The translations under genes were made by a program, and so were the position numbers. A stretch of DNA of 63,657 nucleotides from Octopus bimaculoides (lineage: Eukaryota). The notes below the pieces were generated by a model. That model was not told the DNA's origin. It ran no database searches and saw only the letters and a list, made by a program, of their open reading frames with translations. This document shows, piece by piece, positions 45,801 through 62,338 of the stretch (position 1 is its first letter; each line of letters begins with the position of its first letter). The DNA lies in NCBI RefSeq assembly GCF_001194135.2, contig NC_068984.1, positions 52,745,416-52,809,072 of the forward strand. Reading direction: 5' to 3'.

Positions 45801-48800
45801 TAATCATCTATAGTTAGACATATTTGCATGTGTAGAAGTAGTCGCTTGATAAATGCAAAATGATGGCTATTATTTTATTAATGAGATAAATTACTAGGTA
45901 TAAAATTCTCTATACATGTATGTGTGTTCATATTGCTTGATTGATTAATAATAAAATACTAAGTTGAGTAATTGACAGAATCATATAGTCTTGTGATTTT
46001 GTAGATATGTTGTCCTAATATGTCAGACTCAAAAACATTTTGATAGCAGAGAGTTTAAGAAAGTTGGATGTTACTTATTAGGATGTCAGTGTATAAGTCT
46101 CATGAACTGGTAGATTTGTATGCACTTTGCAGAAGTGAGTCTGAATACCAGGAAAGTCTCATATTTTTATATTTAATATGCATGCACATACGTTCAGTTG
46201 TGTGTGTGTGTGTGTGAATTCATTTAGTTTATAATTACAGTTGAGAAGTTCAATGTTACAATTTGCCACTTTCCTGACATTGTTCCATAGATCCAGTATG
46301 TTTAGATTATTTAGATTAACCTATGCAGGGGATGAAAAATCAAACATCATAATGGAGTGCCATTGCAGTGTGGATGTATGTTGGCAATCTCTAGATCTAG
46401 TTAATTGTGATATTTAGCATGGAACAAAATTCAAGAATGCAATTGTGCCAGTGTACTCCTTGTTTTCTATGTTAGGCATTCTTTATTGAACATGACCTGG
46501 TCTGGTGGTGAATAATCTGTTTATTAGTACTTGAGATTAGTAACCTTGAATGAAAAGGAGTAGCATTTTCAACATGAAACTATACACTTGTACTTTCGGT
46601 TAAGTTATCTTTAGAAATTTTGTACTTAGATTAACAACTAAAATATTGCCAGTGGTTTATTTTCAAATGACCAACATAAAGAGTTTTTCTTGCCATGAGA
46701 ATGCTTTTTTGCATGCATGCAACACACTGATAAAAGCTTATATTGCAATGTATATCTGGATAATTTTAATCTCAATGTTTCTGAAATCTTTTTATTTCAA
46801 GAAACATTTTACAAAGATTGAACCTTATACACAAATGTTGCAATTTTTATATAATGACTTGGAGAAAGTATGTTACATAAAAGTATAATTGTTTTGTCAC
46901 CACTAAACTGAAAAAGGATTTTGATAACATTATCATCCATCATTATATTTTAACATTTACACTACTGGCATAGTTTAAAAAAGCAACATCTAATTATTAC
47001 TGTGTTCACTTAATATTATTCTAAGTCTTGTGCATGTGATTGTATGTTCTGCTTTTGCTGTGGTGGTGACTAGAGCTGTCCAAGTGTTGAGAAATCGCAG
47101 CTCCATGGACGATGACCGCATTTGTGATTTGGAGCAGAAATGCAAAGATGCAGAGCTGTTTGCTTCTGAAAGCCAGAAAAAATATGATGAGGTATGTTGT
47201 ACTGGCCACTTAGTTTGCATGCACTTGTTGACACCATTTTTTCCCCATACAGAGCCAAGAAAGCACTTGAAAACAGAGGTGCACATGATTATGACAGAAT
47301 CTGCTGTCTAGAAGATATCGCAAGAGAAAACACACAAACAGTTAATGATGCAGAACAGAAATACGAGGAGGTATGTTAACGCGAGACGTATTAAGCACGG
47401 TTAATTTAAACAGTACGAAAATGATTTAAAGATTCGGATGAAGAAGCAGACAGCTGTTTTGTGTATATATATCTCATTTTTTATTAATATTTTTATTTGT
47501 TTTTATTTCAGTGTCAAAGTCTTGTTGATTGTGAGATGGGGGTCACTTGATGGGTTTTTTTTTTTTTTTTTTTTTCTATTATTAATTGACATATTTCTTT
47601 CAGTGTATATTTTTTAAATGTCCATGAAGTTCATGTGCTGAAATTTGGCCTAGTACATTATTTAGATTTAACCTTTTGTTCTTCCACTGTCCGCTGGCAG
47701 AGCGCTCAAAGTACTTGAAAGCAGGAATCAAGTTGATGATGAAAGGATAGATCAACTTGAAGCTAATCTCAAAGAAGCTAAGTACATAGCTGAAGAAGGT
47801 GATCGCAAATATGATGAGGTGATTTTATGCACCAACTGTATGCATGCTTTATTCACTAAAGGTCTATTCACTGCAGTTGAACTTCATATTATCAACATAA
47901 TATAAATAATGAAGCCACATCCGTTTGTAACATAGTTAACCCAACTAATACTATCGCCTGCGCTTTAATTGTACCAATTTCTTAACTTATGAGCAATATC
48001 TGTTCTGCACCACTAGAGGGCGCAAAGTGTTGGAAAACAGGAGCCAAGGAGATGAAGAACGTATCGACTTACTGGAGAAGCAATTAGAGGAAGCCAAATG
48101 GATTGCTGAAGATGCTGATCGGAAATTTGATGAGGTGACAGCTTGGTGTTTGCTGTGCCAGTCTGATGAATTTGGCAAAGTGTTATGATGCTTTCGGAAA
48201 AAAAAATGAAATTTTTGACCCAAATTTGGGATTGCATTGTTTTTGAAGCCAAAAAGTTTGCTTGGCACTTTTAGAACTCAGATGAAATATGTTTACAGTT
48301 CCAATTTCCTCAAAAAAAAAAATAGAAAAGGAAATATTAGAAGAGAGACAATAGAAGAAAAGATTGTGATTAGCATTAGTTGTAGATGTTAATGCATGAA
48401 TTACAGATGTTTCAAAGGCATGTTAAATTACCTTGTTCATTGGTATTTAATTCAGGATAATGTGTAAAATGTAGGTAGATATATACAACTTAGTACAAAG
48501 TTATCTAACATAGCGTAACTTCAATACTAATTCTTAAGATTAGTTGGATAAGATTTTTTAGTACTAAACCCAGTTTTCTTACGACTTGATGTTTTCTTTT
48601 TGTGTGTATGTTTTTTGATAATTGAAATACATTTTGTTTATATTTTTATTTGTATTTTTTAAAGATTCCTTCAACTTGAATTTCATAACATTATTTTACT
48701 TTTTTTTTTTTTTTTTATCCAAATTAATTATCTATTTTAATTATAACCTTTTGGATATCTACTAATTTAGATATTTACATTTTACTATTTGAATCTTTTC

Positions 48801-62338: not shown

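Follow-up and report, generated by a model that had tools for sequence, protein, structure and literature searches.

We analyzed a 63,657-nucleotide stretch of the Octopus bimaculoides genome (contig NC_068984.1, positions 52,745,416 to 52,809,072 of the forward strand; hereafter the window, in which positions are counted from the first letter) and found that the region under study is the 3' two-thirds of a single tropomyosin gene, LOC106871823. In this gene, tandem exon duplication has very probably given rise to the exon clusters 4a to 4d, 5a/5b, 6a to 6c, and 8a/8b, from each of which one member enters an mRNA, together with an optional cassette, 9alt, so that two main forms are made. The array is real and expressed and is almost certainly functional; it is ordinary for the tropomyosin gene family, and its isoforms are already present in public annotation. 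The assignment to LOC106871823 follows from the alternative first exon 1L (18476 to 19045), since all of its 190 residues are the same as in O. bimaculoides XP_014773975.1 (190/190), whereas Octopus vulgaris differs at 5 of them; 1L is a fast-evolving exon.

The gene was first located with an octopus tropomyosin probe, the N-terminal half of which matched poorly; no conclusion was drawn from this probe, and the later analysis was based on the window's own translation. The exons were defined by scanning the + strand of the 63.7-kb window for all AG-L-GT intervals of the right length that were open in the right phase. Exon 3 (42332 to 42465, 134 nt), which is part of every isoform, is the donor to four exons of 118 nt in phase 1: 4a (47074 to 47191, encoding 39 residues), 4b (47253 to 47370, beginning after a 61-nt gap from 4a), 4c (47701 to 47818, of the bivalve-like LKEAKYIAE type), and 4d (48017 to 48134), the canonical copy with the highest use. 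They are followed by two 71-nt exons, the canonical 5a (49714 to 49784) and 5b (49885 to 49955), which encodes 23 residues and is the most diverged copy, and by three 76-nt exons, 6a (52712 to 52787), 6b (53234 to 53309), and, 61 nt farther downstream, the canonical 6c (53371 to 53446). Exon 7 (56937 to 56999, 63 nt) is single copy and again belongs to every isoform. Two 70-nt exons come next, the canonical 8a (58658 to 58727) and 8b (58952 to 59021, encoding 23 residues), then the stop-containing cassette 9alt (60779 to 60903; 85, 99, or 125 nt, depending on the donor), and finally the common last exon 9, whose coding part lies at 62256 to 62338 and whose untranslated region (UTR) extends past 62338. 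At the 5' side, exon 1a (12731 to 12844, 114 nt), joined with exon 2 (13730 to 13855, 126 nt), exon 1L, and exon 1b (35944 to 36066) provide alternative starts. All these exons are on the + strand, and those from 4a onward have AG/GT ends and contain no stop in the canonical phase. The alternative exons span tropomyosin residues about 126 to 284, and within the window no coding exon other than 3 and 7 is invariant; no second copy of exon 2, 3, or 7 was detected in it by the length-class scan and shuffle comparison. A preliminary description, made from the letters of this DNA, had proposed a 4 x 2 x 3 x 2 set of copies with the same phase, AG/GT ends, no stops, and conserved heptad residues, three alternative starts, and only exons 3 and 7 shared by all isoforms. 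The scan bears out each of these points, including the sites of the copies.

Adjacent copies within each cluster are homologous and have the same length and phase. Each length class contains 36 to 81 open AG-L-GT intervals, and only the copies listed above score positive against the canonical exon; in the exon-4 class, these scores are 199, 125, 74, and 66, with the next best of 36 candidates at -8. None of 20,000 residue shuffles reached the observed similarity for 4b, 6a, 6b, or 8b, and 1 of 20,000 did so for 9alt; the corresponding figure for 5b (134/20,000) is weak. Protein identity between sibling copies is only 16 to 64%. All copies retain the a/d residues of the coiled coil, among them the conserved Asp137 at a d position (compare the a/d strings VLSDILCAASY of 4a and RLSDILLAAAF of 4d), and throughout the alternative segments the heptad repeat is unbroken, with hydrophobic or small residues at a and d. 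The all-alternative isoform, 1b-3-4a-5b-6a-7-8b-9alt, matched the Pfam Tropomyosin family (PF00261) with 182 bits (E value, 1.7e-53; cutoff, 38.6) and aligned to profile positions 1 to 241 of 242. Because an independent 2519-nt DNA contig spans 47000 to 48705 with one difference and carries all four exon-4 copies in order, these copies are truly tandem and no artifact of scaffolding. As a separate observation, 4a, 4b, 6b, and 8b each encode two cysteines, some of them at core a/d positions (for example, Cys148 in 4a and two in 6b), while the canonical 4d, 5a, 6c, and 8a encode none. With these residues, the alternative isoforms might form disulfides between chains or be sensitive to redox state.

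Three raw RNA-seq runs of O. bimaculoides (X21, X22, and X23) were examined over six stretches, four of them 6 kb long and overlapping and two short; read counts are given in the order X21/X22/X23. All 12 alternative exons have GT..AG junction reads on both sides in the three runs, including 4a, 4b, 5b, 6a, 6b, and 8b, for which the preliminary description had named such reads as the check to be made. Exon 3 was joined to 4a (663/411/534 reads), 4b (173/80/123), 4c (27/78/148), and 4d (698/2322/2465). From there, reads led into 5a from 4a (427/305/370), 4b (199/83/142), 4c (29/60/109), and 4d (1297/4165/3890) and into 5b from 4a (29/61/81) and 4b (20/6/14). Exon 6a was reached from 5a (430/266/350) and from 5b (65/50/44). 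Exon 7 was entered from 6b (75/95/95) and 6c (1251/3558/2868), the joint from 6a being visible as loose ends on both sides, and was itself joined to 8a (1357/3144/2724) and 8b (377/281/327). Finally, 8a was spliced to 9 (1390/3006/2449) or 9alt (154/156/127), and 8b was spliced to 9alt (254/174/229) or 9 (109/83/78).

No 4a-to-4b joint was found in a focused look at these two exons (1050 to 1595 reads per run, with a depth of 400 to 900 at 4a), and none between two exon-4 copies, from 5a to 5b, from 6b to 6c, or from 8a to 8b is among the best-supported joints listed. The upper bound for any joint between two exon-4 copies is about 40 reads, compared to 7322 for exon 3 to any exon 4 (<0.6%), and that for 8a to 8b is about 13 reads, compared to 8210 for exon 7 to exon 8 (<0.2%). 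The preliminary description had also pointed out that no cassette length is divisible by 3, which means that double inclusion or skipping would shift the frame; indeed, both the skipping of exon 4 and the inclusion of 4a together with 4b lead to immediate stop codons. The members of the clusters are expressed, spliced in frame, and mutually exclusive.

The C terminus is switched differently. Two terminal exons had been proposed; the second C-terminal coding exon is real, but 9alt turned out to be an internal, penultimate cassette with its own stop, spliced onto the shared exon 9. The 8a- and 8b-to-60779 joints show a switch of the lev-11 type, in which a stop-containing penultimate exon is spliced onto an otherwise coding last exon: exon 9 is coding and provides the stop when joined straight to exon 8 and is 3' UTR when it stands behind 9alt. 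Three 9alt donors were joined to 62256: the one following 60863 with 107/72/118 reads, the one following 60877 with 59/53/24, and the one following 60903 with 358/272/328. All three yield the same protein end, HELMQ followed by the stop, which for the 60863 donor is rebuilt across the junction with exon 9, and their difference is confined to the 3' UTR. Use of 9alt exchanges the C-terminal 27 residues encoded by exon 9 for 29 others.

The choices made in different clusters are coupled. Exon 9alt was taken by 8b in 68 to 75% of the reads compared to 5 to 10% for 8a (odds ratio, 21 to 57; P <= 1e-117). Exon 5b follows 4a (7 to 20% of 4a transcripts) and 4b (6 to 9%), and a 4d-to-5b joint is absent among the joints listed. 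Use also depends on the sample: 4a, 8b, and 9alt accounted for 42%, 22%, and 21% in X21 and for 14%, 8%, and 10% in X22. The use of these three exons covaries over the three samples, and the ratio of 5a-to-6a to 5a-to-6c joints takes the same order. Use of 4b reaches 11%, and 4c is found in only 2 to 5% of the transcripts. The repertoire is dominated by the canonical chain 4d-5a-6c-8a-9 plus an alternative program and does not consist of 288 equally available forms. Such coupling agrees with a published account in which duplicated exons of tropomyosin genes are allotted to isoform classes defined by promoters (PMC3342872).

We propose that the three 5' ends (1a+2, 1L, and 1b) combine with the exon clusters to give an abundant form, 4d-5a-6c-8a-9, and an alternative one with mainly 4a or 4b, 5a or 5b, 6a or 6b, 8b, and 9alt. 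These forms would differ in the surface of actin-binding periods 4 to 7 and in the end that takes part in the head-to-tail overlap, with the coiled-coil core being kept. Given the cassette lengths, mRNAs that include two members of a cluster or skip all of them would acquire early stops and would presumably be lost by nonsense-mediated decay. For 4a/4b and 6b/6c, exclusivity may in addition be steric. The introns between these exons measure exactly 61 nt, and the sole predicted branch-point-like motif is 40 nt (4a/4b) or 38 nt (6b/6c) away from the donor, while the threshold below which U1 and U2 interfere with each other is about 50 nt from donor to branch point (PMC7969005). A steric block of this kind was first shown for exons 2 and 3 of alpha-tropomyosin, according to the citation of Smith and Nadal-Ginard 1989 in PMC7969005. 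Coassembly of U1 and U2 within the 61-nt introns would then be prevented. This mechanism cannot cover the other five of the seven intervening introns, because they are 100 to 446 nt long. The choice among the remaining copies would probably be made by tissue-specific splicing regulators.

Several points weigh against this explanation as a whole or in part. The bound on 6b-to-6c joints is weaker than those given above (up to about 30 reads, compared to 265 for 6b to 7), and that on 5a-to-5b joints is weak (up to about 108 unlisted reads, compared to 171 for 4a to 5b). The 61-nt introns might still be spliceable in cephalopods, the branch points being predicted. Long-range pairing, for example, of 4a with 8b, is based only on covariation in three samples, and the labels "muscle" and "nonmuscle" for the two forms would be drawn from abundance and from other animals. 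Lastly, an inverted-repeat scan of 46800 to 48300 did not find docking-site/selector RNA pairing of the Dscam exon 6 type: it returned only poly-T/poly-A pairs and isolated matches of 13 to 29 nt with 71 to 92% complementarity, none of them common to all copies. As a separate observation, 20 nucleotides inside 4b (47343 to 47362) are 85% complementary to 47996 to 48015, just upstream of the 4d acceptor. If not due to chance, such pairing could mask this acceptor in transcripts that use 4b.

The array is represented in the annotation of two octopus species. In RefSeq, the gene was listed in 2015 as "tropomyosin-2-like isoform X1...X34," with at least 34 predicted isoforms, and it is now named "tropomyosin Tod p 1.0102 isoform X.."; for O. 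vulgaris, the corresponding ENA records are CAI9721600-633. The 32 annotated sequences we retrieved contain 4a, 4b, 4d, 5a, 5b, 6a, 6b, 6c, 8a, 8b, 9alt, and 9, and 4c is absent from them. An exact lookup found 14 constructed isoforms to be absent, 12 of them with 4c, but two plausible 4d controls were absent as well, and a protein query centered on 4c matched nothing but short fragments, none of them an octopus protein. Exon 4c may be missing from current annotation. Although no paper on the cephalopod tropomyosin gene was found in the literature searched, the preliminary suggestion that such an array might be new for cephalopods does not hold, since it is in RefSeq for O. bimaculoides and in ENA for O. 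vulgaris and other molluscs have multiple copies of exons 4 and 6.

Exons 4a, 5b, 6a, 6b, 8b, and 9alt encode identical protein in O. bimaculoides and O. vulgaris, and 4b differs at 3 of 39 residues. DNA of related octopuses (organisms B, D, and E) is about 1% different near the exon-4 cluster, with two exonic changes, too few for a test of constraint. These are the only exonic changes in the exon-4/exon-5a region; they lie at 47319 and 47366, both in 4b, and are both nonsynonymous (Ile to Met and Glu to Ala), and O. vulgaris 4b has a third change, Asn to Tyr. Judged by these substitutions, 4b appears to be evolving faster than its sister exons. In the same DNA, divergence is about 0.8% at 47000 to 49000, introns included, compared to about 4% at 54923 to 55317, far inside intron 6-7, a contrast that could stem from constraint acting on the cluster's introns or simply from local variation.

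We compared the exons with those of Ostrea edulis, Mytilus galloprovincialis, Elysia crispata, and P0018, a read-through metaclust model from a mollusc; P0018 contains three exon-4 segments in succession and two of exon 6. The identity of 4c to the exon-4 sequences of Ostrea and Mytilus isoforms and to the second copy of P0018 is 72 to 77% (72% for P0018), and the third exon-4 copy of P0018 shares 90% identity with 4d. Because both types occur in other molluscs, at least the split between 4c and 4d is older than the cephalopods. In M. galloprovincialis, isoforms X11 and X12 differ solely in exon 4. Unlike these molluscs, the octopus has a fourth exon-4 copy, and 4a and 4b are without a close counterpart among the sequences retrieved; no close nonoctopus match to 5b, 8b, or 9alt was found, and a query made only of alternative exons returned octopus proteins only, plus two weak matches. 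The bivalve isoforms share with the octopus a long N terminus of the 1L type. Exon 1L replaces exons 1 and 2 and encodes a Lys/Ser-rich N-terminal extension of 190 residues without a Pfam match; its motifs [FY]D[KR]VIY, DPLFSD, and SNTMIK[FY]AII..E.QN.L.VSL are common to the long isoforms of O. edulis and M. galloprovincialis, so that 1L looks like a conserved molluscan module.

The coupling described above bears directly on the idea that the clusters are chosen independently, as a free, Dscam-like combinatorial generator of about 288 proteins. That number had been derived in the preliminary description from the exon counts, and the arithmetic is right; far fewer isoforms dominate, because the exon choices are strongly coupled. 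All four combinations of 8a or 8b with 9 or 9alt do occur in the reads, 4a is joined to both 5a and 5b, and many combinations are found among the RefSeq models. These models, however, were built from short reads and do not prove full-length molecules, and the strong preference of 8b for 9alt, the appearance of 5b after 4a and 4b and its absence after 4d among the joints listed, and the sample-dependent covariation of 4a, 8b, and 9alt all speak for linked choice. We consider a free generator very improbable.

We find it scarcely more credible, indeed marginally less so, that the additional copies represent pseudo-exons in decay or mere noise of splicing, without protein function. Such decay could account for the low identity of 5b to 5a (26%), for the unusual cysteines in 8b and other alternative exons, for the 2 to 3 amino acid changes and zero synonymous ones in 4b between close octopus species, and for the rarity of 4c (2 to 5% of transcripts). 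It is at odds with the exact length, phase, AG/GT ends, open frame, and heptad core kept in all copies and with a use that reaches 42% (4a), 11% (4b), 22% (8b), and 21% (9alt) and varies by sample. For six alternative exons, moreover, protein identity is 100% between two octopus species that differ in their other exons, and the 4c and 4d types of sequence are found in other molluscs as well. Least probable of all, to the point of being negligible, is an assembly artifact in which collapsed haplotypes, or paralogous genes joined at gaps, mimic duplicate exons. The window does contain six gaps (runs of N), one of them within the array at 54839 to 54848, in intron 6-7 and outside all exons, about 1.4 kb after 6c and 2.1 kb before exon 7, in a surrounding of TA/TG simple repeats and a high-copy element. 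It was bridged by no short-read DNA contig from four runs, the unique contigs ending at 54535 and restarting at 54928. No splice joints entering the sequence next to the gap were seen in the RNA reads, and the coding frame is independent of it because RNA reads join 6a, 6b, and 6c directly to exon 7. RNA reads in fact join exons over all introns, that with the gap included; the copies are too different in protein (16 to 64% identity) to be alleles; the exon-4 copies are held in order by one DNA contig; and the separately assembled O. vulgaris genome has the same exon set. Tandem duplication followed by mutually exclusive and coupled use of the copies thus remains the explanation we favor.

The internal exons of the vertebrate TPM genes measure 134, 118, 71, 76, 63, and 70 nt, the same lengths as in the octopus. 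Like the octopus gene, TPM1 to TPM4 choose between alternative promoters (1a+2 versus 1b), between the mutually exclusive internal exons of the pairs 2a/2b and 6a/6b, and among alternative C-terminal exons (9a to 9d). However, exons 4, 5, and 8 are single in vertebrate TPM and duplicated in the octopus, and the exon-2 pair is absent from the octopus window; vertebrate diversity is spread over four paralogous genes, whereas that of the octopus lies within one. Drosophila Tm1 shares with the octopus gene duplicated internal exons, alternative C termini, and long low-complexity N-terminal extensions, and insect sequences named "tropomyosin-1, isoforms 33/34" were among the matches in our protein search. 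Drosophila has two tropomyosin genes, and its duplications are independent of the octopus ones (PMC9741552).

A close parallel is lev-11 of Caenorhabditis elegans, which is likewise one gene that has alternative promoters along with a number of clusters of mutually exclusive, equally long exons. Its exon 9c is coding when used alone and noncoding behind the stop-containing 9a or 9b (PMC5921574), exactly the arrangement of 9alt and 9 in the octopus. Six tandem-duplication events beyond a shared N-terminal one have occurred in lev-11 (PMC9741552). Nevertheless, the duplicated exons of the two genes are not orthologous, and the duplications are described as independent in each lineage (PMC9741552 and, as cited there, Irimia et al. 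2010). Exon 7 of lev-11 measures 139 nt and has other boundaries than in the octopus, and the four-copy exon-4 cluster belongs to the octopus. Both PMC3342872 and PMC9741552 credit Irimia et al. 2010 with the description that tropomyosin exons have been duplicated in tandem repeatedly among bilaterians.

Some features of the introns were recorded along the way. Peaks of RNA depth at 43850 to 44050, 44850 to 45050, 48700, 49000 to 49180, 51000 to 51200, and 54780 to 54840 were considered as extra exons and rejected; they are made up of simple repeats or high-copy sequence, and the joints there are junk, without GT..AG junctions. High-copy elements or simple repeats at 47555 to 47580, 48976 to 49183, 54485 to 54558, and 54781 to 54854, with a DNA word depth of up to 10^4 to 10^7, draw many RNA reads and false joints and are not exons. 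Partial A-to-G clusters were seen in RNA at 61208 to 61251 and 61932 to 61950, in the intron between 9alt and 9, and at 44639 to 45012 in intron 3, A-to-G changes are mixed with T-to-C changes and accompanied by joints of opposite strands. These intronic clusters look like ADAR-type hyperediting of inverted repeats.

The array does not represent a new kind of biology, as its principle is known from the literature and RefSeq already lists the isoforms. It may serve in the quality control of annotation and in the study of coordinated splicing, and it is relevant to allergen work, tropomyosin being the main mollusc allergen and the isoforms differing over known epitope regions. Overall, the octopus gene is a clean example of one gene standing in for a gene family, which in vertebrates comprises four TPM genes, and it does so by means of four stacked exon clusters, a C-terminal switch, and three promoters. 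More tentatively, and with the odds in our view clearly on the other side, 4a, 4b, 5b, 8b, and 9alt, several of which encode cysteines, may have been added in the octopus lineage to an older molluscan set of 4c/4d and 6-type exons and be used as a coordinated block over 14 kb, perhaps linked to a promoter, with 4c possibly escaping annotation. If this were true, a second, cephalopod-specific tropomyosin would in effect be encoded inside the first.

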